DNA of 63,152 nucleotides, counting the filler, from Octopus bimaculoides (taxonomy: Eukaryota), in NCBI RefSeq assembly GCF_001194135.2. It is 10 parts of 9 records of this genome, joined end to end, with 100 filler letters (N's around TTAATTAATTAA, not from the genome) between each part and the next. Parts side by side here need not be neighbours in the genome. Positions count along the whole stretch, not along the records: positions 10,867 to 30,422 come from NW_026316741.1; 9 more parts are not named here. One strand, given 5' to 3'. The notes below the pieces were generated by a model that saw only the letters and a list, made by a program, of their open reading frames with translations, was not told the DNA's origin and searched no databases. A program made the translations under genes and the position numbers. Numbering within the stretch: position 1 is the stretch's first letter; each line of letters starts with the position of its first letter. Below are positions 10,867 through 30,422 of this stretch, piece by piece.

Positions 10867-13800
10867 AACAAAAGAACGAATGAAAGGACGAACGAACGTA
10901 AGTACATACGAACGAAAGAACGAACGTACGAACGAATCAAACAAGGAACAAACGAACGCACGTACATACTTACGTACCTTATGCCCGTACGTACCTTATG
11001 CCCGTACCTTATGCCCGTACCTTATGCCCGTACCTTATGCCCGTACGTACAAACGAACGAACGAACAAACGAACGAAAGAACGAACAAACGTACGTACAA
11101 TCGAACGAACGAATGTACGTACGAACGAACGAACGAATGAACGAACGGACCAACGAAACAACGAAGGAACGAACGTACGTACGTAAGAACGAACGGACGA
11201 ACGAATGAACGATCGAACGAAAGAACGTACGTACAAACGAACGAACGTACGTAAGTACGTACGAAACAACGAACGAACGTACGTACGTACGAATGAACGA
11301 ACGAATGAACGTACGTACATAAGTACGTATGTAATAACGAACGAACCAACGAAAGGTCGAACGTACGTACGTACGAATGAACGAAAGNNNNNNNNNNNNN
11401 NNNNNNNNNNNNNNNNNNNNNNNNNNNNNNNNNNNNNNNNNNNNNNNNNNNNNNNNNNNNNNNNNNNNNNNNNNNNNNNNNNNNNNNNNNNNNNNNNNNN
11501 NNNNNNNNNNNNNNNNNNNNNNNNNNNNNNNNNNNNNNNNNNNNNNNNNNNNNNNNNNNNNNNNNNNNNNNNNNNNNNNNNNNNNNNNNNNNNNNNNNNN
11601 NNNNNNNNNNNNNNNNNNNNNNNNNNNNNNNNNNNNNNNNNNNNNNNNNNNNNNNNNNNNNNNNNNNNNNNNNNNNNNNNNNNNNNNNNNNNNNNNNNNN
11701 NNNNNNNNNNNNNNNNNNNNNNNNNNNNNNNNNNNNNNNNNNNNNNNNNNNNNNNNNNNNNNNNNNNNNNNNNNNNNNNNNNNNNNNNNNNNNNNNNNNN
11801 NNNNNNNNNNNNNNNNNNNNNNNNNNNNNNNNNNNNNNNNNNNNNNNNNNNNNNNNNNNNNNNNNNNNNNNNNNNNNNNNNNNNNNNNNNNNNNNNNNNN
11901 NNNNNNNNNNNNNNNNNNNNNNNNNNNNNNNNNNNNNNNNNNNNNNNNNNNNNNNNNNNNNNNNNNNNNNNNNNNNNNNNNNNNNNNNNNNNNNNNNNNN
12001 NNNNNNNNNNNNNNNNNNNNNNNNNNNNNNNNNNNNNNNNNNNNNNNNNNNNNNNNNNNNNNNNNNNNNNNNNNNNNNNNNNNNNNNNNNNNNNNNNNNN
12101 NNNNNNNNNNNNNNNNNNNNNNNNNNNNNNNNNNNNNNNNNNNNNNNNNNNNNNNNNNNNNNNNNNNNNNNNNNNNNNNNNNNNNNNNNNNNNNNNNNNN
12201 NNNNNNNNNNNNNNNNNNNNNNNNNNNNNNNNNNNNNNNNNNNNNNNNNNNNNNNNNNNNNNNNNNNNNNNNNNNNNNNNNCGAACACACGTACGTACGT
12301 ACGAACGAACAAAAGAACGAACGAACGGACAGAAGAACGTATGTACATACGAACGAAGGAACGAAAGAACAAACGTACTACGTACGAAAGAAGGAACGAA
12401 CGAACGAACGAACGAACGAACGAAAGAACGAACTAACGAATGAACGTACGTAAGTATAAATGAACGAAGATACGTACCTGCGTACGTGCGAACGAACGAG
12501 CGATCGAACGAACGAGCAATCGAACGAACGAGCGATCGAACGAACGAAAGAACGTACGTACATACGTACGTACGTACGTACGAACGAACGAACGAACGTA
12601 CGTACGAATGAACGAACCAACCAACTAAGGAACCAACGAACGAAAGAACGAACTACGTATGTAAGTAGACACGAAATATCGAACGAACGTACATACGTCC
12701 GAATGAACGAACGAACGAACTTACGAACGAACGAACGAATGATCAAACAAACGACTGAACGTTTGTACGTACGTACGTCTGGACGCACGAACGAACGTAG
12801 GTGCGTACGGACGAAATAACGAATGAAAGAACGAACGAACAAACGAACGAGCGTTCGAAGGTAAGAACGATCGAACGAACGAGAGTACGAACGTTCGTAC
12901 GTAAGAATGATCACACGAACGAACAAGCGATAGTCCGTACGTACGTACGAACGAACGTCCATACGTACGAACGAACGTACGTAAGGGTGGATGAAAGAAC
13001 GAACGAATGTACGTACATGAGTCATTAAGTACGAACGAACAAACAAACGTACGAACATACGAACGAACGAACTTACGTACGTACGAAGGAGCGAACGAAC
13101 AAGATGAACGAACGAAAGAACGAACGAACGTACGAACGTGCAAAAGAACGAACGAATGAATAAACGTACGTACTTACGTACGTATGTACGAACGAACGAA
13201 CGAACGAACGAACGGAAGAATGAACGTGCGTACGAACGTAAGTATGTACGTACGAACGAACGAACTAAAGAACGAACAAACGAACGACCGAACGAAAGGA
13301 CGAACGTACGTAGGAACATTGGAACGAACGATCTTTCGTACGTACGTACGAACGATGGAGCGAACGAACGAATGAAAGAACGAACTAACGAATGAACGGA
13401 CGTACTTACGTATGTACGACCGAACGAAAGAACGAGAGTACAAAATAACGAACGAACGAACGTACAGAGGAACGAGCTAACGAATGAACGAACGAACGTA
13501 AGTACGAACGTAAGTACGAACGTACGTACAAACGAATGAATGTACGTACGTACGTACGACCGAACGAACGAATGAAAGAAAGAACCAACGAAACAATGAA
13601 CGAACGTACCTGCGTACATACGTACGTACCTAAGAACGAACGGATGAACGAACGTACGTAAGTACGAAATTACGAACGAATGAACGATCGAACGAACGAA
13701 CACACGTACTTACGTACGTACGAACGACCAAAAGAACGAACGTAAGTACATACGAACGAAGGAACGAAAGAACGAACGTACGTACGTACGAACGAATGAA

Positions 13801-16800
13801 CGAACGAACGAAACAAGGAACAAACGAACGTACGTACGCACGTACATACTTACGTAAGTACGTACGTACGAACAATCGAACGAAGGAACGTACCTTATGC
13901 CCGTACGTACAAACGAACGAACGAACGTACAATCGAACGAACGAATGTACGTACGAACGAACGAACGAACGAAAGAACGAATGAATGAACGAACGGACCA
14001 ACGAAACAACGAAGGAACGAACGTACGTACGTAAGAACGAACGGACGAACGAATGAACGATCGAATGAACGAACTCATGTACAATCGAACGAACGAATGT
14101 ACGTACGAACGAACGATCGAAAGAACGAACGAATGAACGAACAGACCAACGAAGGAACGAACGAACTCATGTACGTACGTACGAACGAACAAACGAACGA
14201 ACGGACGAACGAACGTAAGTATATACGAACCAACGAACGAACGTACGAACAAACGAACGATCTAGCGTACAAAAGAACAAAAGAACGTACGTACAAACGA
14301 ACGAACGCACGTAAGTACGTACGAAACAACGAACGAACGTACGTACGTACGTACGAATGAACGAAGGAACGAATGAACGTACGTACGTACGAACAAATCA
14401 ACGAATGAAAGAACGAACGAACGAACGAACGAACGAACGAAGGTTCGTACGTAAGAACGATCGAACGAACGAAAGAAAAAACGTTCGTACGTAAGAACGA
14501 ACGAACGAGTGAAACGAACGACCGAACGAAAGTCCGTACGTACGTACGTCTATACGTACGTACGTACGTACGCACGCACGAACGAACGAAACAACGAATG
14601 AACGATCGAACGAAAGAACGTACCTTATGTCCATACGTACGAAAGAACGAACGAACGTACGTACGTATGTACGAACGACCGACCGAACGAACGTACGTAC
14701 GTACAAACGAACGAACGAATGAACGAACGTATGGACGATCGAATGAACGAACGTATGGACGATCGAACAAACGAACACACGTACGTACGTACGAACGAAC
14801 AAAGAACGAACGAACGGACGGACGAACGTAAGTACATACGAACGAAGGAACGAAAGAACAAACATACTACGTACGAAGGAAGGAAGGAACGAAGGAACGA
14901 ACGAACGAATGAACGAGCGTACAAAAGAACAAAAGAGCGAAAGAACGTACGTACAAACGAACGAACGAACGAACGAACGAACTAACGAATGAACGTACGT
15001 AAGTATAAACGAACGAAGATACGTACCTGCGTACGTACGAACGAACGAGCGATCGAACGAACGAAAGAACGTACGTACATACGTACGTACGAACGAACGA
15101 ACGAACGTAGGTTCGAATGATCGAACGAACGAACCAACCAACGAAAGGACGAACGTACGTACAAACGAACGAACGAACGAACGACCGAACTAACGAATGA
15201 ACGTACGTAAGTATAAACGAACGAAGATACGTACCTGCGTACGTACGAACGAGCCATCGAACGAACGAAAGAACGTACGTACATACGTACGTACGAATGA
15301 ACGAACGAACGTGCGTTCGAATGATCGAACGAACCAACCAACCAACCAACCAACCAACGAAAAGACGAACGTACGTATGTAAGTAGACACGAAATATCGA
15401 ACGAACGTACGTACGTCCGAATGATCGAACGAACGAACGAACTTACGAACGAATGAACGAACAAACGAATGAACGTTTGTACGTACGTACGTCTGGACGC
15501 ACAAACGAACGTAGGTGCGTACGGACGAAATAACGAATGAAAGAACGAACGAACGAGCGTTCGCAGGTAAGAACGATCGAATGAATGAAAGTACGAACGT
15601 TCGTACGTAAGAATGATCACACGAACGAACGAGCGATAGTCCGTACGTACGTACAAACGAACGAACGAACGCANNNNNNNNNNNNNNNNNNNNNNNNNNN
15701 NNNNNNNNNNNNNNNNNNNNNNNNNNNNNNNNNNNNNNNNNNNNNNNNNNNNNNNNNNNNNNNNNNNNNNNNNNNNNNGCACGATCGAACGTACGTAAGG
15801 GTGGATGAAAGAACGAACGAACGTACGTACATGAGTCATTAAGTACGAACGAACAAACGAACGTACGAACATACGAACGAACGTACGTATGTACGAAGGA
15901 GCGAACGAACAAGATGAACGAACGAACGTACGTACGTACGAACAAACGAACGTACGTATGTACGAACGAACGAACGAACGAACGAACGGAAGAACGAATG
16001 TGCGTACGAACGTAAGTATGTACGTACGAACGAACGAACGAAAGAACGAACGAACGAACGTACGTAGGAACATTGGAACGAACGATGGAGCGAACAAACG
16101 AACGAACGAACGTACGTAGGAACATTGGAACGAACGATGGAGCGAACGAACGAACTAACGAATGAACGGACGTACTTACGTATGTACGACCGAAAGAACG
16201 AAAGAACGTACGTACGTAAGTACAAACGAACGAAGATACGTACCTACGTACGTACGGACGAACGAGCGATCGAACGAACGAAAGAACGAACGAACGAACG
16301 TACATACGAACGAACGAACGTACCTCCATACGTACGTACGTACGAACGAATGAACGAACGAACGTAAGTACGTACGACCGAACGAACGAATGAACGAACC
16401 AACCAATGGAACAACGAACGAACGTACCTGCGTACGTACGTAAGAACGAACGTACGTAAGTACGAACGAACAAAAGAACGAATGAAAAGACGAACGAACG
16501 TAAGTACATACGAACGAAGGAACGAAAGAACGAACAAACGTACGTACGTATGTTGGAACGACCGAACGAACGAACCTGCGTACGTACGTACAAACGAACG
16601 AACGAATGTACGTACGTACGTACGAACGAATGAACGTATGTAAGGACGAACTTAGGAACGAATGAACGATCGAACGAACGAACTCAGATACGTACGTACG
16701 TAAGTACGAACGAACGAAAGAACGAACGAACGAAAGAACGAACGAACGAACGAATGAACGAACGTAAGTACTACGAACGATGACGAACGTACGTACATGC

Positions 16801-16841
16801 GAATGAATGATCGTACGTACGTAAAATCGAGAGAAAGAACG
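10867..16841 (+). repeat. ACGA/ACGT composite CpG-rich satellite, left block (ACGA orientation)
   Basis: Interleaved runs of GAAC and GTAC tetramers with single-base variants. Landmark motifs (AAGGGTGGATGAAAG, CATGAGTCATTAAGTAC, AAACAAGGAACAAACG) recur about 2.5-2.9 kb apart. Confidence 0.95.
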
Positions 16842-17769
16842 NNNNNNNNNNNNNNNNNNNNNNNNNNNNNNNNNNNNNNNNNNNNNNNNNNNNNNNNNNN
16901 NNNNNNNNNNNNNNNNNNNNNNNNNNNNNNNNNNNNNNNNNNNNNNNNNNNNNNNNNNNNNNNNNNNNNNNNNNNNNNNNNNNNNNNNNNNNNNNNNNNN
17001 NNNNNNNNNNNNNNNNNNNNNNNNNNNNNNNNNNNNNNNNNNNNNNNNNNNNNNNNNNNNNNNNNNNNNNNNNNNNNNNNNNNNNNNNNNNNNNNNNNNN
17101 NNNNNNNNNNNNNNNNNNNNNNNNNNNNNNNNNNNNNNNNNNNNNNNNNNNNNNNNNNNNNNNNNNNNNNNNNNNNNNNNNNNNNNNNNNNNNNNNNNNN
17201 NNNNNNNNNNNNNNNNNNNNNNNNNNNNNNNNNNNNNNNNNNNNNNNNNNNNNNNNNNNNNNNNNNNNNNNNNNNNNNNNNNNNNNNNNNNNNNNNNNNN
17301 NNNNNNNNNNNNNNNNNNNNNNNNNNNNNNNNNNNNNNNNNNNNNNNNNNNNNNNNNNNNNNNNNNNNNNNNNNNNNNNNNNNNNNNNNNNNNNNNNNNN
17401 NNNNNNNNNNNNNNNNNNNNNNNNNNNNNNNNNNNNNNNNNNNNNNNNNNNNNNNNNNNNNNNNNNNNNNNNNNNNNNNNNNNNNNNNNNNNNNNNNNNN
17501 NNNNNNNNNNNNNATATTCTTGTGTATGAAAAACTCATAACTTGTCATTGCATAATATATTTAACGAGTGAAGCAATTAAAAGACAATAAACATGAAATA
17601 TACTGTGATTACAGGATGCAATATTCAAGAAAGAATAATGTGTAGGGTTGTCAGGAACAGGAGATCTGGTATAGAGGTCCTTACATTATGGAAAGGAAAT
17701 TGAAAAGAGTGGGAGGTGAATATTGGAAAGAAACAAAACAAAAACAAATCTAAAATGTTTGGAAATATT

Positions 17770-18168
<399 letters not shown>

Positions 18169-18492
18169 NNNNNNNNNNNNNNNNNNNNNNNNNNNNNNNN
18201 NNNNNNNNNNNNNNNNNNNNNNNNNNNNNNNNNNNNNNNNNNNNNNNNNNNNNNNNNNNNNNNNNNNNTATGAGTTTTTCATACACAAGAATATTGTAAA
18301 GTTTACATAGACAATCACTTCAAGTAGAAAGACAGAGAGGACCACAAGGGAAGAATACGAGCCATAAGTGTAGTTTAGTGCCCCACACCAGACTGATTCC
18401 TTGTTAGTTTCTGAATAATGTTTTCTTTAAATTAAACTTTGCAGAGGTAAGTTTTCAAATGTCCAGATTAAGATTATTTTCATAAAATTGAG

Positions 18493-21400
18493 AACGTTCG
18501 TTCTTACGTGCATACTACGTACGTTCGTTCGATCGTTCTTTCTTTCGTTTGTACGTACGTACGTTCGTTCCTGCGTGCGGACGTACGTACAAACGTCCAT
18601 TCTTTTGTTCGTTCGTAAGTTCGTTCATTCGTTCGGACGTACGTACTTTCGTTCGATATTTCCCGATTACGTACGTTCGTCCTTTCGTTCGTTCTTTCTC
18701 TCGATTTTACGTACGTACGATCATTCATTCGTACGTACGTACGTTCGTTCATCGTTCGTAGTACTTACGTTCGTTCGTTTGTACGCTCGTTCGTTCGTTC
18801 TTTTGTGCTCTCGTTCGTTCGTACTTACGTACGTACGTATCTGAGTTCGATCGTTCCTAAGTTCGTACTTACGTACGTACGTACGTTTGTTCGTTTATAC
18901 GTACGGGCATAAGGTACGTTCCTTCGATCGTTCGTACGTACATACTTACGTAAGTACGTACGTTCGTTTGTTCCTTGTTTCGTTCGTCTGTACGCTCGTT
19001 CGTTCGTTCGTTTGTTCTTTCGTTCGTTCGTTCGTACGTATAGACGTTCGTTCGATCGCTCGTTCGTCCGTACGTACGTAGGTACGTATCTTCGTTCGTT
19101 TGTACTTACGTACGTACGTACCTACGTACGTTCTTTCGTTTGTTCGGTCGTACATATGTAAGTACGTCCGTTCATTCGTTAGTTCGTTCTTTCATTCGTT
19201 CGTTCGCTCTATCGTTCGTACGTACGTACGAAAGATCGTTCGTTCCAATGTTCCTACGTACGTTCGTTCGTACGTACATACTTACGTTCGTTCGTTCTTT
19301 CATCCACCCTTACGTACGTTCGATCGTGCGTTCGTACGTACGTACGGACTATCGCTCGTTCGTTCGTGTGATCATTCTTACGTACGAACGTTCGTACTTT
19401 CGTTCGTTCGATCGTTCTTACCTGCGAACGCTCGTTCGTTCGTTATTTCGTCCGTACGCACCTACGTTCGTTCGTGCGTCCAGACGTACGTACGTACAAN
19501 NNNNNNNNNTACGTACATACTTACGTTCGTTCGTTCTTTCATCCACCCTTACGTACGTTCGATCGTGCGTTCGTACGTACGTACGGACTATCGCTCGTTC
19601 GTTCGTGTGATCATTCTTACGTACGAACGTTCGTACTTTCGTTCGTTCGATCGTTCTTACCTGCGAACGCTCGTTCGTTCGTTATTTCGTCCGTACGCAC
19701 CTACGTTCGTTCGTGCGTCCAGACGTACGTACGTACAAACGTTCATTCGTTTGTTCGTTCATTCGTTCGTTCGATCATTCGGACGTACGTACGTTCGTTC
19801 GATATTTCGTGTCTACTTACGTACGTTCGTCCTTTCGTTCGTTGGTTGGTTTGTTCGTTCATTCGTTCGTTAGTTTGTTCGATCATTCGTACGTACGTTC
19901 GTTCGTTCGTACGTACGTTCTTTCGTTCGTTCGTTCGTACGCAGGTACGTATCTTTGTTCGTTTAGACTTACGTACGTTCATTCGTTAGTTCGTTCGTTT
20001 GTACGTACGTTCTTTCGTTCTTTTGTACGCTCCTCCGTTCGTTCGTTCGTTCCCTCCTTCCTTCGTACGTAGTACGTTTGTTCTTTCGTTCCTTCGTTCG
20101 TATGTACTTACGTTCGTCCGTCCGTTCGTTCGTTCGTACGTACGTACTTGTGTTCGTTTGTTCGATCGTCTATACGTTCGTAAGTTCGTACTTACGTACG
20201 TTCGTTCATTCGTTCGTCCTTTCGTTCTTACGTACATACGTTCGTTGTTTCGTTGGTTCGTTCATTCGTTCGTTCGTATGTACGTTCGTTCGTACGTACA
20301 TTCGTTCGTTCGTTTGTACGTACGTTCGTTCGTTCGGTCGTTCGTACGTACGTTCGTTCGTTCGTTCGTAAGTTCGTTCATTCGTTCGTTTGTTCGATCA
20401 TTCGCTCGTTCGGACGTACGTACGTTCGTTCGATATTTCGTGTCTACGTACGTACGTAAGTTCGTTCGTACTTTCGTTCATTCGTACGTACGTACGTTCG
20501 TCCTTTCGTTGGTTAGTTCGTTCGTTCTTACATACGTACTTACGTACGTACGTTCATTCGTTCGTACGTATGTACGTTCATTCGTTCGTACGTACGGACA
20601 TAAGGTACGTTCGTTCGTTCGATCGTTCTTAAGTACGTACTTACCTTAAAACGTACGTACGTTCATTCGTCCGATCGTTCGTTAGTTCGCACGTACGTTC
20701 GTTCATTCATTCATTCGTTCCTTCGTTCGTACGCACGTTCGTCCGTTAGTTCGTTCGTTCCTTTGTACGTACGTACGTTCGTTGTTTCATTCGTTCGATC
20801 ATTCGTTCTTTCGTTCGTACGTACGTACGTTCATTCCTTCGTTGGTTGGTTGGTTCGATCGTCCGTTCGTTTGTTCGTACGTACGTACATTCTTCGTTTG
20901 TTTGTACGTACGTTCGTTTGTTCGTTCCTTCGTCCGTTCGGTCGTTCCTACGTTCGTACGTACGTTCGTTCGTACGTACGTATTATGTACGTACGTTCGT
21001 TCGTTAATTCGTTCGTACGTACGTACATACCTATGTATGTTCGTTCTTTCATGCGTTCGTTCGTTCCCTTGTTCATTTGTTCGTACGTACATTCGTTCAT
21101 TCGATCGTTCGTTCGATCTTACGTACTTACGTTCGTTCGTCCGTTCGTTCGTTTGTACGTACGTTCGTTCTTTCGAAGGCTCGTACGTTCGTTCGTTAGT
21201 TCGTATGTACGTACGTTCGTTTATTCGTTCGTTCGTTCGTACGTACTTACGATCGTTCGTTCATTCGTTCGTTCGTTCGTACGTACGTACGTTCTTTTGT
21301 AGGCTCTTTCGTTCGTTCGATCCTTCGTTCGTTCGTACGTTCGTTCGTTCGTTCGTTCATACGTTCGTTCGTTCGTTCGTTCGTACGTACTTAGTTCGTT

Positions 21401-21638
21401 CTTTCGTTCGTTTGATCATTCGTTTGCTCGTTCGTTCGTTCGTCCGTTCGTTCGTGCGTACAGACATATGTTTCGTTCATTCGTTCGAACGTTCGTACGT
21501 ACGTACGCTCGTACGTTCGTTCTTTCGTACGTACGTAGGTTCGTTCATTCGTTCGTACGTACTTTCGTTCGTTAGTTCGTTCGTACGTACGTTCCTTCGT
21601 TGGTTGGTTGGTTCGTCCGTTCGTTTGTTCGTACGTAC
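18493..21638 (-). repeat. Same satellite in inverted (TTCG) orientation
   Basis: Reads as the reverse complement of the left block; for example 18690-18760 mirrors 16771-16841. Contiguous with the unique island at about 18490. Confidence 0.95.
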
Positions 21639-24600
21639 GTACGTACGAACAAACGAACGGACGAACGAACCAACCAACGAAGGAACGAACGTACATACGA
21701 ACGAACGAATGAAACAACGAACGTACGTAGGTACGAACGAACGAATGAACGTACGTACGTACGAACAAATGAACGAACGAACGCATGAAAGAACAAACGT
21801 ACATAGGTATGTACGTAAGTACGAACGATTTAACGAACGAACGTACGTACGAACGATCGAATGAACGAACGAACGTACGTACATTTTTACGTAAGTACGT
21901 ACGTACGAACGTTCGAACGAATGAACGAACCTTATGTCTACGTACGAACGAACGAAAGGACGAAGGAACGAACAAACGAACGTACGTACAAACGAACGAA
22001 GAATGTATGTACTACGTACGTACAAACGAACGAAGAATGTACGTACGAACGAACGGACGAACGAACCAACCAACGAAGGAATGAATGTACGTACGTACGT
22101 ACGTAAAAACGAACATGCGTACGAACGAATGAATGAACGACCTACGTACGTGCGAACTAATGAACGATCGGACGATCGAACGTACATATGTTTTTACGTA
22201 AGTACGTACGTACGAACGAACAATCGAACATACGAGCGTACGTACATATTTACGTAAGTACGAACGTTCGAACGAAAGAACGAACGAACAAGCGAACGAA
22301 TGATCAAATGAACGAAAGAACGAACTATGTACGTACGAACGAACGAACAAATAAACGAACGTACGTACGTACGTCCGAACAAACGAACGAACGAACGTAA
22401 GTACGTAAGATCGAACGAACGATCGAATGAACAAACGTACGTACGTACGTACGAATGAACGACCGAACAAACGAACGAATGAACGTACGTACGTATGAAC
22501 AAATGAACGATGGAACGAACGAACGCATGAAAGAACGAACATATATAGGTATGTACGTACGTACGAACGAATTAACGAACGAACGAACGTACGTACGTAG
22601 GAACGATCGATCGAACGAACGTTCGTACGTTTTTACGTAAGTACGTACGTACGAAATTTCGAACGAAAGAACTAACGGACGAAGGAACGAACAAACGAAC
22701 TACGTACGTACGTATAAACGAACGAAGAAAGTACGTACGTACGTACGTACGTACGTACGTACGAACGGAGGAACGAAGCAACCAACAAAGGAATGAACGT
22801 ACGAACGAAAGAGCGAATGATCGAACGAACGAAACAACGATCGTACGTACGTAAAAACGAACGAACGAACTAACGGACGAATGTGCGTACGAACGTAGGT
22901 ACGAAGGAAGGAAGGAACAAATGAATGAATGAACGTATGTACGTGCGAACTAACGAACGATCGAACGATCGGACGAACGAACGTACGTACTTTTTTACGT
23001 AAGTACGTACGTACGATCGAACGAAAGAACGAACGAACGAATGAACGAACGTACGAAAGAACGAATGAACAAACGTACGTACGAACGAACGAGCCTACAA
23101 AAGAACGAACGTACGTACAAACGAACGAATGAACGTAAGTACGTACGAACGATTGAACGAACGATCAAATGAACGTACGTATGTACGAACAAATTAACGA
23201 ACGAACGTACGTACGAANNNNNNNNNNAAGTACGTACGAACGATTGAACGAACGATCAAATGAACGTACGTATGTACGAACAAATTAACGAACGAACGTA
23301 CGTACGAACGAACGTACGTACGAACGAACGTACGTACGTACGAACGTACGTACGTACAAACAAACGAATGAACTAACGGACGAACGTACGTATGAAGGAA
23401 CGTACGAACGAACGAATGAATGAATGAACGTACGTACGTATGTACGAACGAACGCACGATCGAACGATCGGACCAACGAGCGTACGTACATATTTACGTA
23501 GGTACGTATTTACGTAAGTACGCACGTACGAACGATCGAACGAACGAATGTACGTTATGTCCGTACATACGAACGAAGGAACGAAAGAACGAACGGACGA
23601 ACGAACCAACGAACGTACGTGCGTACGGACGAACGAACGAATGATCGAACGAAAGAAACAACGAACGAACGAGCGTACGTACGAACGAACGTACGTACGA
23701 ACTTGCGTCCGATCAAACGAACGAACGAACGTTCGTACGTATTTACGTAAGTACGTATTTACGTAAGTACGTACATACGAACGATCACACGAACGAACGA
23801 TCGTACGTACGTATGTACGAATGACCGAACGAACGCACGTACGTATGTACGAATGACTGAACGAACGAACATACGTAGGTACGTACAAACGAAGGAACGG
23901 ATGATCGAACGAATGAAACAACGAACGTACGTGCGTACGAACGTACGTGCGTACGAACGTACGTACGAACGAACGGACGTACGAACGTACGTACGAACGA
24001 TCGAAGGAATGAACGAATGAACAAACGTACTTACGTACGAACGAACGAATGAACAATCGGACGAACGAGCGTGCATACGTATTTACGTAAGTACGTATTT
24101 AAGTATGTACGTACTTACGAACGATCGAACGAACGAACGAAAGAACGAAGGAACTCACGAACGAACGAACGTACGTATGTACGAACTTTCGAACGAATGA
24201 TCGATCGACCGAACGAACTCAATGACGTATGTACGAACGAACAAACGGACGAACAAAAGAACGAACGAACGGACGAACGAACAGACTAACGAACGAACGT
24301 AAGTAAGTATGTACGAACGAACGAACGAACGAAAGATCGAATGAGCGTACAAAAGAACGAACGTACGTACAAACGAACGAACGAATGAACGAACCAACAA
24401 ACGAATGAATGAACCTACGTACGTACGAACGAACGAAAGAACGAACGAACAAACGAAAGAACGAACAAACGAACGAACGAACGAAAGAACGAACATACGT
24501 ATGTACGAACGAACGAAAGAACGAACGAGCGTACAAAAGAACGAACGTACGTACAAACGAACGAACGAACGAATGAATGAACGAACGAACGAACGAATGA

Positions 24601-27600
24601 ACGAACGAACGTAAGTACGAACGAACGAACGTACGTACGTATGAACGAACGAACAAACGAACGAATGAACGTACGTACGTACATACGAACGAACGTACGA
24701 ACGTTTTTACGTAAGTACGTACGTACGAACGTTTTTACGTAAGTACGTACGTACGAACGTTCGAACGAATGAACGATCTTTATGTCTGTACGTAGGAACG
24801 AACGAAAGAACTAACTGACGAACGAAGGAACGACCGAACAAACGTACGTACGTACAAACGAACGAACGAATGTACGTACGTACGAACAAAAACGAACGGA
24901 CGAACCAACCAACCAACCAGCGAACAAACGTACGTACGAACGAACGAACGAAACAACGAACGTTCGTACGTACGAACGAACGAACGAACGAACGTACGAA
25001 CGAACGATCGAATGAATGAACGAACGTACGTTGGTACGTACGAACGAACGGACGAACGAACAGACTAACGAACGAACGTAAGTACGTACGTACGAACGAA
25101 CGAAAGAACGAACGAACGAAAGCACTAACGGACGAACGAAGGAACGAACGAACAAACGTACGTACGTACGTACAAACGAATGAACGTACGTACGAATAAA
25201 AACCAACGGACGAACGAACCAACCAGCGAACGAACGAACGTACGTACGAACGAACGAACGTACGTACGTACAAATGAACGAACGAACTAACGGACGAACG
25301 TACGAACGAACGAACGATCGAATGAATGAACGAACGTACGTTGGTACGTACGAACGAACGGACGATAGAACGATCAGACCAAAGAACGTACGTACGTATT
25401 TACGTAAATACGTATATACGTATGTACGTACGTACGAACGATCGAACGAACGAACGAACGAACAAACGAACGAACGAAGGAACGAACGTACGTACCTACG
25501 AACGAACGNNNNNNNNNNAACGATCAGACCAAAGAACGTACGTACGTATTTACGTAAATACGTATATACGTATGTACGTACGTACGAACGATCGAACGAA
25601 CGAACGAACGAACAAACGAACGAACGAAGGAACGAACGTACGTACCTACGAACGAACGAAAGAACGAACGAGCGTACAAAAAAACGAACGTACGTACAAA
25701 TGAACGAACGAACGAACGAATGAACGAACGAACGTAAGTACGAACGAACGATAGAACGAATGAACGATCCTTATGTCTGTACGTAGGAACGAACGAACGA
25801 ACGAACGAAAGAACTAACGGACGAACGAAGGAACGAACGAACAAACGTACGTACGTACGTACAAATGAATGAACGAATGTACGTACGTACGAACAAAAAC
25901 GAACGGACGAACCAACGAACCAACGTACGTACGAACGAACGAACGAAACAACGAACGTAAATACGAACGAACGAACTAACAGACCAACGTACGAACGAAC
26001 GAACGAACGATCGAATGAATCAACGAATGTACGTTGGTACGGACGAACGAACGGACGATCGAACGATCGGACCAACGAACGTACGTACGTATTTATGTAA
26101 GTACGTATTTACGTATGTATGTACGTACGAACGATCGAACGAACGAACGTAAGTTATGTCCGTACGTACGAACGAAGGAACGTTCCTTATGTCCGTACAT
26201 ACGAACGAAGGAAGGAACGAACGAACGATGGGACGAACGAGCGTACGTACGTATTTACGTAATTACGTACGCACGAACTATCGAAAGAACAAACGAACGA
26301 ACGAACGAATGATCGAACGAACGAAACAACGAACGTCCGTACGAACGAACGAACGTACGTACGAACATACGAACGAACGTATGAACGAACGAACGAACGT
26401 ACGTACGAACGAACGAGCCTACAAAAGAACGAACGTACGTACAAACGAACGAACGAACGTAAGTACGTACGAACAAACGAACGAACGAATGAACGTACTA
26501 TGTACGTATGTACGAATGAATTAACGAACGAACGTACGTACGAACGAATGAACGAACGAACGTACGTACGTACGAACGAACGAACGAAACAACGAACGTA
26601 CGTACGTACGAACAAACGAATAAACTAACGGATGAACGTACGTACGAAGGTACGTACGAACGAACGAACGAACGAACGAATGAATGAATGAACGTACGTA
26701 CGTATATACGAACGAATGCACGATCGAACGATCGGACCAACGAACGTTCGTACGTATTTACGTAAGTTCGTACGTACGAACGATCGAACGAACGAACGTA
26801 CGTACAAATGTAAGTACGCACGAACAAACGAACGGACGAACGAATAAACGAACGGCCGAACGAACGAACGTACGTGTGTACGAACGAAGGAACGAGTGAT
26901 CGAACGAACCAAACAACGAACGTACGTGCGAAAGTAAGATCGAACTTGCGTCCGAACAAACGAATGAACGAACGTACGTACGTACGTACGAACGAACGAT
27001 CGGACGAACGAGCGTACGTACGTATTTACGTAAGTACGTACATACGAACGATCAACCGAACGAACTAACGTACGTACGTATGTACGAATGACTGAACGAA
27101 CGAACGTACGTCGGTACGTACAAACGTAGGAACGTATGATCGAACGAACGAAACAACGAACATACGTACGTACGAACGAACGTACGTACGAACGAACGAA
27201 CGTACGTACGAACGAATGAACGTACGTACGAACGAACGTACGTACGAATGAACGAACGTACGGACGAAAGAAAGAACGAAGGAACTAACGAACGAACGTA
27301 CGTACGTATGTACGAAGGAGCGAACGAACGAACGTACGTAGGTACGTACAAACGAACGAACGAATGTACGTACGAAAGTTCGAACGAACCAACCAACCAA
27401 CGAAACAACGAAGGAACAAACGTACGTACGTAAGAACGGACGGACGAACAAATGAACGAACGTACGCAAGTACGAACTTTCGAACGAATGAACGATCGAA
27501 CGAAAGGACTCACTGAGGTAAGTACGAACGAACAAACGGACGAACAAAAGAACGAACAGACTACCGAACGAACGTAAGTACGTACGTACTAACGAACGAT

Positions 27601-30422
27601 CGAACGAACGAAAGAACGAACGAGCGTACAAAAGAACGTACGTACGTACAAACGAACGAACGAATGAACGAACGTACGTACGAATGAACGAACCAACAAA
27701 TGAATGAATGAACGTTCGTACGTACGAACGAATGAACGATCGAACGAACAAACGAAAGAACGAACGTACATTCTTGTGTATGTACGTAGGAACGTACTAT
27801 GTACGTACGAACGTACGTATGTACGTACGAACGTACGTACTTACGAACGAACGAACGAAGGAAAGATCGAACGAACGTACGTACGTACGTACGAACGTAC
27901 TTACGAACGAACGAACGAATGAGCGAACATACGAATGAACGTATGTACGTACTTACGTCCGGACGCAGGAACGAACGTACGTCCGTACGAACGAAATAAC
28001 GAACGAGCGTAACGAATGACCAAACGAACGAACGAACGAACGAATGTGCGTATGTACGTGCGAATGCGAACGAATGTACGAATTATCGAACGAACGAACG
28101 AACGTACGTACGTTTTTACGTAAGTACGAACGAACTAACGAACGAAAGAACGAACGAGCGTACAAAAGAACGAACGTACGAACAAACGAACGACGAACGA
28201 ATGAATGAACGAACGTAAGTACGAACGAACGAACGAACGTACGTACGTTTTTACGTAAGTACGTACGTACGAAAGTTCGAACGAATGAACGATCCTTATG
28301 TCTGTACGTAGGAACGAACGAACGAAAGAACGAACAAACGTACGTACGTACGTACAAACGAACGAACGAATGTACGTACGTACGTGCGTACCAACAAAAA
28401 CGAACGGACGAACAAACCAACAAACGAAGGAACGAACGTACGTACGAACGAACGAACGAACGTACGTACGTACGAACGAACGAACTAACGGGCGAACGTA
28501 CGTACGTACGTACGAACGAACGAACGATCGAATGATCGGACCAACGAGCGTACGTAAGTACGTACGTAGGAACGATCGTACCTTATGTCCGTACGTACGA
28601 ACGAAGGAACGTACCTTATGTCCGTACATACGAACGANNNNNNNNNNCCGTACGTACGAACGAAGGAACGTACCTTATGTCCGTACATACGAACGAAGGA
28701 ACGAACGATCGAACGAACGAACGAAAGAACAAACGAACGAACGAACGAGCGAACGAACGTACTTACGTACGAACGAACAAACGAACGAACGAACGAAAGA
28801 ACGAACGAGCGTACAAAAGAACGAACGTACGTATAAACGAACGAACGAATAAATGAACGAACGAACGTAAGTACGAACGAATGAACAAACGAACGACCGA
28901 ACGTACGTACATACGTACGAATGAACGATCGAACAAACGAACGAATGAACGTACGTATGTACGTACGAACGAATGAAGGATCCAACGAACGAAAGAACGA
29001 ACCTCCATACGTATGTACGTACGTACGAACGAACTAACGAACGAACGTAGTACGTTTATACGAAAGTACGTACACACGTTCAAAGAAACGAACGGACGAA
29101 CGAACGAATGACCGAACGTACGTACGTACGAAAGAACGAACCAACAAACGAATAAATGAACGTACGTACGTACGAACGAATGAACGATCGAAGGAGTGAA
29201 TGAAAGAACGAACGTACATACGTATGTACATACGTACGAACGGACGTATGTACTTACGTACGAACGTACGTACTTACGAACGAACGATCGAACGACCGAA
29301 TGAAGGAAAGAACGAACGAACGAACGAACGAACGAATGAACGAACAAACGAATGAACGTTTGTACGTACTTACGTCCCGACGCAGGAACGAACGTACGTA
29401 CCAACAAAATAACGAACGAGCGAAACCAATGACCGAACGAACGAACGAACGAATGTGTGTATGTACGTGCGAACGTACGTCCATACGTACGTGCTTACGA
29501 ACGAACGAACGAATGAACGTACGTACGTTCGAACGAATTAACGAACGAACGTACGAAAGAACGAACGAGCGTACAAAAGAACGAACGTACGTACAAACGA
29601 ACGAATGAACGTACGAACGAATGAACGATCGAACGACTGAAAGAACGAACGTACATACGTATGTACGTACACACGAACGAAATAACGATCGAACGTACGT
29701 ACGTTTATACGTAAGTACGTACGATTTTACGTAAGTACGTACGTACGAACGAACGAACGTACGTACAGACGAACGAACGAACGGACGAACTAACGAACGA
29801 ATGTACGTACGTACAAACGAACAGACGAACGAACCAACCAACGAACGTACGTACGTGCGAACGAACGAAACAACGAACGTACGTACGAACGAACAAACTA
29901 ACGAACGAACGTACGTATGTACGAACTTTCGAAAGAATGAACGAACGAACGAACGCATTATCGAACGAACGAAACAACGAACGTACGTACGAACTAACGA
30001 ACGAACGAACGTACATTCGAACGAACGAACGACGTACGTACGTACGAACGAGCCTACAAAAGAACGAACGTACGTACATAAATCCATACGTATGAAGGAA
30101 TGAACGAACGAACGAACAAACGAACGTACGTACGTACATACGAACGAACAACCGAACGAACGAACGTACGTACGTAGGAACATTCGAACGAACGATCTTT
30201 CGTACGTACGTCCGAACGATGGAACGAACGAACGACCGAAAGAACGAACTAACGAATGAACGGACGTACTTACGTACGTAGGTACGTACGAACGAACGAA
30301 CGAACGAATATGCGTACGAGCGAACGAACGTACGTACGTACAACGAAGGAACGATCGATCGAACGAGCGTATCTTTGTATTTATGTAAATACGTACGTAC
30401 GAACGATCTTACGAAGGAACCT
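21639..30422 (+). repeat. ACGA/ACGT satellite, right block (ACGA orientation)
   Basis: Tetramer mosaic with recurrent landmarks TTTTACGTAAGTACG, CCTTATGTC, GAGCGTACAAAAGAACG and AACCAACCAACG. Runs to the scaffold end. Confidence 0.95.

Follow-up and report, generated by a model that had tools for sequence, protein, structure and literature searches.

The scaffold piece NW_026316741.1 of Octopus bimaculoides (RefSeq assembly GCF_001194135.2), which occupies positions 10867-30422 of the 63,152-nucleotide window (the whole stretch of DNA analysed, 10 parts of 9 records joined end to end), is dominated by a period-4 tandem array of the unit CGWA. We interpret this as a non-coding, satellite-like, degenerate array that was probably derived from a microsatellite and arose next to a zinc-finger gene as a side effect of repeat dynamics; to this reading, which attaches no sequence-specific function to the array, we give a probability of about 0.72. 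The array is simple-repeat DNA of an ordinary kind, unusual in its large size and CpG richness.

The first-pass annotation had described the whole piece as an array of at least 19.5 kb. The period-4 array is real and accounts for 16,864 read bases; the piece, however, is built of nine contigs with 17,745 read bases and 1,811 N letters, contains 499 overlap bases that are present twice in the scaffold as well as 881 bases of unique DNA, and its array changes strand twice. Once the overlap copies and the unique DNA are subtracted, a non-redundant array of about 16.4 kb is left, arranged as three blocks in alternating strand. The claim that it extends past both scaffold ends holds, since the piece begins and ends with array sequence. 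The observation was thus largely right, and overstated in size and continuity. The array is laid out as follows:

10867-11387, + strand: array block in GAAC orientation (contig 1), running off the left end (TRF, word counts)
12282-16841, + strand: array block in GAAC orientation, in two contigs (TRF, word counts)
18495-21638, − strand: array block in inverted (GTTC) orientation (GAAC/GTTC counts per 300 bp; TRF consensus CGTT)
21639-30422, + strand: array block in GAAC orientation, running off the right end, with irregular direct block duplications at offsets of 0.3-4.3 kb

The period emerges from base autocorrelation, in which identity is 0.72 at lag 4 as against 0.10-0.21 at lags 1-3 and then falls smoothly to 0.36 at lag 400, with no secondary peak beyond lag 4 in that range. 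Tandem Repeats Finder (TRF) reports period-4 arrays at 12289-16764, 18518-21644 and 21633-30366. A dynamic-programming parse divides the array into 4,183 four-base words, of which 1,540 (36.8%) are CGAA and 921 (22.0%) CGTA; a further 32.5% are one substitution away from either, so that about 91% in total lie within one change, with 59% of the words being perfect and 41% imperfect. The two-tetramer composition originally proposed is therefore well founded; representative k-mers of the array are CGAACGAACGTACGTACGAACGAA. Perfect CGWA runs of ten units occur 21 times, as against none in 100 shuffles. The parse needed 132 slipped bases. Period 4 is dominant, but the four-base register does not hold as widely as had been stated: it is maintained for a mean of 65 words (about 260 bp), a median of 42 and a maximum of 324.

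The array was also correctly recognized as a CpG-dense element in AT-rich, CpG-poor surroundings: its G+C content is 44% and its CpG observed/expected (o/e) ratio 3.26, with about 16 CpG per 100 bp, as against 32% and 0.35 in the 881 unique bases, which are the only unique DNA in this piece. By the definition of Gardiner-Garden and Frommer a CpG island has a G+C content of at least 50%, a CpG o/e of at least 0.6 and a length of at least 200 bp. The array resembles such islands in its strong local CpG excess in CpG-poor surroundings, and differs from them in that its G+C content stays below the limit, its CpG excess comes from the repeat unit, its CpGs are decaying and there is no promoter evidence; it is hence not a CpG island.

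The two words are not randomly mixed but form the mosaic of runs that the first-pass annotation had noticed: P(A|A) is 0.82 and P(T|T) 0.69, as against marginals of 0.64 and 0.36 (chi-square 963). The run lengths do not follow a geometric distribution but stay flat up to a cut-off, the T-word running mostly for 1-3 units and the A-word for 1-5, and the longest pure single-word runs reach 7-8 units. The word state correlates negatively with itself at lags 4-6 and, weakly, positively around lag 9: the words alternate loosely at about 32-36 bp (about 8-9 words), without forming a monomer. Superimposed on this mosaic is the landmark word GTACCTTATGYCCGTAC, with 14 occurrences as against 0 in shuffles and a strand that matches the block orientation. 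TRF periods of 13-33 bp correspond to small local sub-arrays, one of which is a local amplification of this landmark word:

10990-11046, + strand: perfect 13-bp tandem of CGTACCTTATGCC, 4.4 copies (TRF, 100% matches)

The non-canonical landmark word, CCTTATGYCC, is locally amplified both in this 13-bp tandem and in 33-bp tandems of 2.4-3.1 copies at 26111-26219 and 28558-28637.

On a larger scale, the order of runs and landmark words is copied, in agreement with the earlier description. Self-BLAST of the array, with the unique DNA and the overlap artefacts masked, was compared with a null of 30 simulated arrays generated by Markov models of orders 6, 8 and 10. Thirty-two alignments exceed the null maximum of 176 bits, reaching 484 bits and together covering 11.3 kb; they have 78-98% identity over 120-750 bp. 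The copied blocks measure 0.1-2 kb, have 80-98% identity and are both direct and inverted. On the left side, a segment of about 2 kb is present in three collinear copies, two direct and one inverted:

11297-13425, + strand: copy 1 of the segment, aligning to 14772-16194 (85-95% identity) and, inverted, to 19142-20565 (85-98%)
14711-16841, + strand: copy 2 (alignments above the Markov null)
18690-20565, − strand: copy 3, collinear with copies 1 and 2

Copy 2 contains in turn a tandem duplication of about 208 bp (14943-15142 and 15151-15346, 95% identity). Neither base autocorrelation to lag 400 nor word-level autocorrelation detects a fixed higher-order repeat. The sole tandem pair (about 2.5-2.8 kb) lies on the left, and the duplication offsets in the right half are irregular (0.3-4.3 kb); there is therefore no regular higher-order repeat. 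The array thus combines features of two classes. It has the head-to-tail unit of 1-6 bp that characterizes microsatellites (period 4, CGWA), and with about 16.4 kb and 59% perfect words it is not one of their short, fairly pure tracts of tens to hundreds of bp. As in satellites, it is a tandem array of kilobase size (at least 11.4 kb when tiled) with homogenised copies, as seen in the block copies above the null; a defined monomer or regular higher-order repeat, another hallmark of satellites, is missing.

The second of the two strand switches coincides with a palindrome, which together with the longest GTAC run is located as follows:

21563-21714: strand-switch palindrome, 152 nt, 92% self-complementary (self-alignment, fold)
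22731-22763: longest pure (GTAC)n run, of 8 units, and longest alternating purine-pyrimidine tract, of 33 nt

The palindrome has a perfect 56-nt core at 21611-21666, centred on (GTAC)4 at 21631-21646, and as single-stranded DNA it folds with −81.6 kcal/mol as against −33.5 in shuffles (z −16). Inverted matches in collinear order reach out to about 1 kb on either side, one of them scoring only moderately above the null maximum and the rest below it. A large perfect palindrome at this switch was considered and rejected: in a forced global alignment, the arms are no more alike than the array background (about 75% identity) once they are more than about 120 nt out. The second switch is more likely real than an assembly artefact, because it lies inside one contig, its arms are non-identical (92%) and its self-complementary core is just 16 nt, a length below the usual assembly k-mer size, which argues against a graph artefact.

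That (ACGT)n can form hairpins, cruciforms or Z-DNA, as had been pointed out, is correct in principle, but the sites are few. The GTAC runs mostly have 1-3 units and at most 8; alternating purine-pyrimidine tracts of at least 12 nt cover 3,071 bases, and just 11 of them reach 20 nt or more. An ordinary 300-nt stretch of the array folds no better than shuffles (z −1.8). The potential for Z-DNA or cruciforms is likely to be minor, because the GTAC runs are short.

The contig junctions bear on an alternative in which assembly produced most of what the piece shows: short arrays, dispersed or allelic, would have been mis-chained into one scaffold, the true array would be much shorter, and the first inversion, around the unique DNA, would come from mis-oriented or haplotype-duplicate contigs. 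Exact suffix/prefix overlaps with 0 mismatches, of 229, 81, 140 and 49 nt, lie hidden at all four 10-N gaps, which include those at 25509-25518 and 28638-28647. These gaps are unmerged contig overlaps; the neighbouring contigs are therefore continuous and the gaps spurious. The redundant copies, each an exact match across a 10-N gap, and two further gaps within the array are:

19510-19738, + strand: redundant overlap copy, equal to 19271-19499 (229 nt)
23228-23308: redundant overlap copy, equal to 23137-23217 (81 nt)
25519-25658: redundant overlap copy, equal to 25369-25508 (140 nt)
28648-28696: redundant overlap copy, equal to 28589-28637 (49 nt)
15674-15778: 105-N gap, splitting the array block 12282-16841 into two contigs
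11388-12281: 894-N gap, with the same array orientation on either side

A 239-bp tandem repeat called by TRF at 19256-19768 was discarded as an overlap artefact of a 10-N gap. The 105-N gap hides little or no sequence, because two paralogues, one direct (12920-13010) and one inverted (19290-19380), continue across the join without interruption and its flanks have GCA in common as an overlap. Across the 894-N gap there is a collinear inverted chain (11297-11387 with 20565-20471, and 12315-12414 with 20135-20036), and, to judge from this inverted paralogue, the sequence lost there would amount to just about 300 bases. A 672-N and a 100-N gap flank the unique contig 17514-18168 (655 bp), the first 26 nt of which (17514-17539) are the exact reverse complement of the start of the next contig (18269-18294). 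This opposed 26-mer allows two explanations: the right contig set may be an inverted duplicate of the content of the 672-N gap, misplaced or flipped, in which case the inverted match of the left contig end at 16841 to 18690 predicts about 395 missing bases; or the zinc-finger DNA may be surrounded by a genuine inverted duplication that was collapsed in the assembly.

Beyond these overlaps and the shared contig start, the mis-chained scaffold would be consistent with the coincidence of contig ends with copies elsewhere, with the disagreement between gap sizes and paralogues, and with the arms on either side of the unique DNA (14711-16841 and 18690-20217), which are collinear inverted copies of each other, as a second haplotype placed backwards would look. 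These arms, however, differ by 9-20%, which is high for alleles, and the second switch, with its non-identical arms, is internal to a contig. Single contigs moreover hold up to 3.7 kb of uninterrupted array, and merging the exact overlaps turns 18269-30422 into a continuous sequence of about 11.6 kb, in which array makes up about 11.4 kb. We therefore hold it unlikely, if still deserving some weight, that the array as a whole is a product of assembly. The scaffold nonetheless needs correction at four spurious gaps, two overstated gaps and one contig set that is flipped or collapsed.

The DNA that interrupts the array includes part of a gene:

17514-18494: unique non-repeat DNA interrupting the array (881 read bases plus the 100-N gap)
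17860-18168, − strand: C2H2 zinc-finger gene fragment with an 84-bp period by TRF (TRF, translation, Pfam)

This fragment encodes three intact fingers; a further finger is truncated by the gap, and an apparent 1-nt frameshift splits the last. The fragment's reading frame continues to a stop codon at 17770. The fragment matches the Pfam families zf-H2C2_2 (2e-31) and zf-C2H2 (4e-25), and its closest named relatives are Octopus proteins with 56-74% identity, none of them an exact match. It may be a pseudogene, or else the frameshift may be a read error. With this fragment about 0.6 kb away from its edge, the array is not set in gene-free DNA.

This proximity counts against a second alternative, namely a structural satellite: the array would be a single locus out of a family that is abundant in the genome and builds heterochromatin, whether centromeric, pericentromeric, subtelomeric or of another kind. 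A long array that reaches both scaffold ends is what such a family would present, and block homogenisation with strand switches is a feature of large satellite arrays; satellites are also the one repeat class with somewhat higher methylation in O. bimaculoides (PMC9476566). The strong decay (41% imperfect words) and the lack of a regular higher-order repeat, on the other hand, do not fit, no such satellite is reported in the open-access literature searched, and similar GAAC/GTAC mosaics occur as ordinary microsatellites of 0.3-0.45 kb in unrelated metagenome contigs. Taken together, we judge a structural satellite distinctly improbable.

The metagenome contigs come from a scan with an exact 24-mer that spans both words, which retrieved five contigs, none of them a long two-word array. 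Two of these, L003 (344-1378) and L005 (1-1042), represent one locus in two samples (88% identity over 1 kb) and carry the GTTC/GTAC mosaic between unique flanks. A third, L004, has a 5-kb GTTC-rich array with few GTAC words, which ends in a different short tandem repeat, ATTCATTCATTGAAATTCATTCGTTC. The two-word mosaic thus arises independently, in the form of an ordinary microsatellite, and the present array is unusual in scale and not in kind.

The pattern of decay within the words bears on a third alternative, in which the array is regulatory: its ACGT or CGAA cores would recruit a DNA-binding protein, for example the neighbouring zinc-finger protein. The density of motifs and the presence of a C2H2 zinc-finger gene nearby might recommend this. 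Yet 1,002 of the 1,361 one-substitution words alter the C or G of the CpG, 504 of these to TG or CA: the CpG is the most mutable part of the unit and not a protected core. It is thus at the CpG that the core motifs decay fastest, whereas constraint on a binding core would predict the reverse, and the zinc-finger fragment may itself be a pseudogene. A protein-binding array accordingly seems very unlikely, and the tests run lend no support to any of the functional roles proposed in the first-pass annotation.

Methylation is sparse in O. bimaculoides: it affects fewer than 10% of the CpGs, chiefly those within gene bodies, and little of it falls on repeats, among which satellites have somewhat more (PMC9476566). 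Where repeats are so little methylated, it is unsurprising that a CpG-dense one persists. Under the microsatellite-derived reading, the following sequence of events may be envisaged: the array would have started from an (AACG)n-type microsatellite; an A>T change, a single A/T transversion turning CGAA into CGTA, would have created a palindromic word; replication slippage would have spread each word locally; larger blocks would have been copied by unequal exchange or template switching; and fold-back (inverted) duplication may have taken place at the palindromic GTAC runs. Amplification would have run ahead of CpG loss, possibly aided by the sparse methylation of octopus intergenic and repeat DNA.

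Several known repeats offer points of comparison. The closest are compound or interrupted tetranucleotide microsatellites of (AACG)n/(ACGT)n type, labelled Simple_repeat by repeat maskers, with which the array shares unit length, motif and slippage-type runs; it is 30-50 times longer, has 59% perfect words, and adds kilobase block duplications, inverted blocks and the palindromic strand switch. The Bkm (banded krait minor) satellite consists of GATA and GACA tetramers, is enriched on sex chromosomes and is widely conserved. The likeness to it is one of architecture only: two four-base words that are one position apart, alternating runs and no fixed long monomer. With CGAA and CGTA as words (GAAC/GTAC) instead of GATA and GACA, the array is not a member of that group, and Bkm has neither CpG nor a self-complementary word. 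A further comparison is with human satellites 2 and 3, in which (CATTC)n arrays of megabase scale and pericentromeric location have diverged within a heavily methylated vertebrate genome. They too are long, diverged simple-repeat arrays with no regular monomer, with strand inversions and with block duplications, and they differ in their five-base unit, megabase scale, known pericentromeric location and heavy methylation.

In the open-access literature searched, the Bkm satellite is mentioned (PMC8303610), and no paper was found that contains the mosaic as a string or describes such a satellite in cephalopods. This agrees with the earlier statement that no described family was recognized: within that literature the array has not been previously described, and the kind of repeat is already known. 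In line with the microsatellite-derived reading, simple repeats are plentiful in octopus genomes, at 8.7% of the assembly in O. bimaculoides and 14.7% in O. minor; in the latter the ten commonest are AT- or CA-rich and none has a CpG (PMC6279123).

Certain observations weigh against the microsatellite-derived reading. With more than 16 kb and a word mix that stays at about 60:40 over its whole length, the array goes beyond an ordinary microsatellite, which could be a sign of constraint, and sequence by itself would hardly suffice to demonstrate the absence of function. CpG motifs also fall outside the ten most common simple repeats of O. minor, and the array is in this respect not a typical octopus simple repeat (PMC6279123). 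The large-scale order seems uncertain, because the assembly is gapped and its contigs break at repeat boundaries. Finally, C>A at word position 1 is found 228 times and the complementary-equivalent G>T at position 2 only 85 times; this asymmetry is unexplained, and it probably comes from copied variant words and not from mutational bias, the substitution spectrum being confounded in that block copies are non-independent events.

If the microsatellite-derived reading is correct, the array clearly illustrates the growth and decay of a four-base repeat made of two words, and also a very CpG-dense repeat that persists in a sparsely methylated invertebrate genome, yet loses its CpGs fastest. It would gain greater weight if the motif were abundant and position-specific, cephalopod centromeres and satellites being barely described in the literature searched. 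A bolder extension, which we consider a long shot, is that the array belongs to a CpG-rich satellite family, abundant and specific to octopods, by which clusters of zinc-finger genes or (peri)centromeric heterochromatin are marked, with the GTAC runs actively driving its growth by hairpin-mediated fold-back duplication. The array would then be an instance from nature in which inversions have their hotspot at a palindromic microsatellite word.

A last alternative, that the array consists of protein-coding low-complexity genes, draws on its 78 open reading frames (ORFs) of at least 80 aa, which reach 441 codons. They lie in several frames simultaneously and on both strands, as expected of a repeat poor in stop codons, and there is neither one preferred frame nor homology to a family: the two array ORFs scanned have no match in Pfam, and the 441-aa ORF has no close relative among 5.8 billion proteins, its best matches being repeat-derived low-complexity peptides with 39-56% identity over a third of the query and without the GTAC-derived 'TYVR' words. 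A coding array was accordingly rejected, and we leave it next to no probability. RNA genes were likewise not found in the array, either by Rfam at the gathering threshold or by ARAGORN. Gene finders are prone to false calls of ORFs of several hundred codons here. The repeat-derived ORFs are exemplified by the one at 12378-13703 on the − strand, containing FVRSFVRTYVRS, and similar repeat peptides are embedded in deposited proteins, such as the sea-anemone entry P0122.

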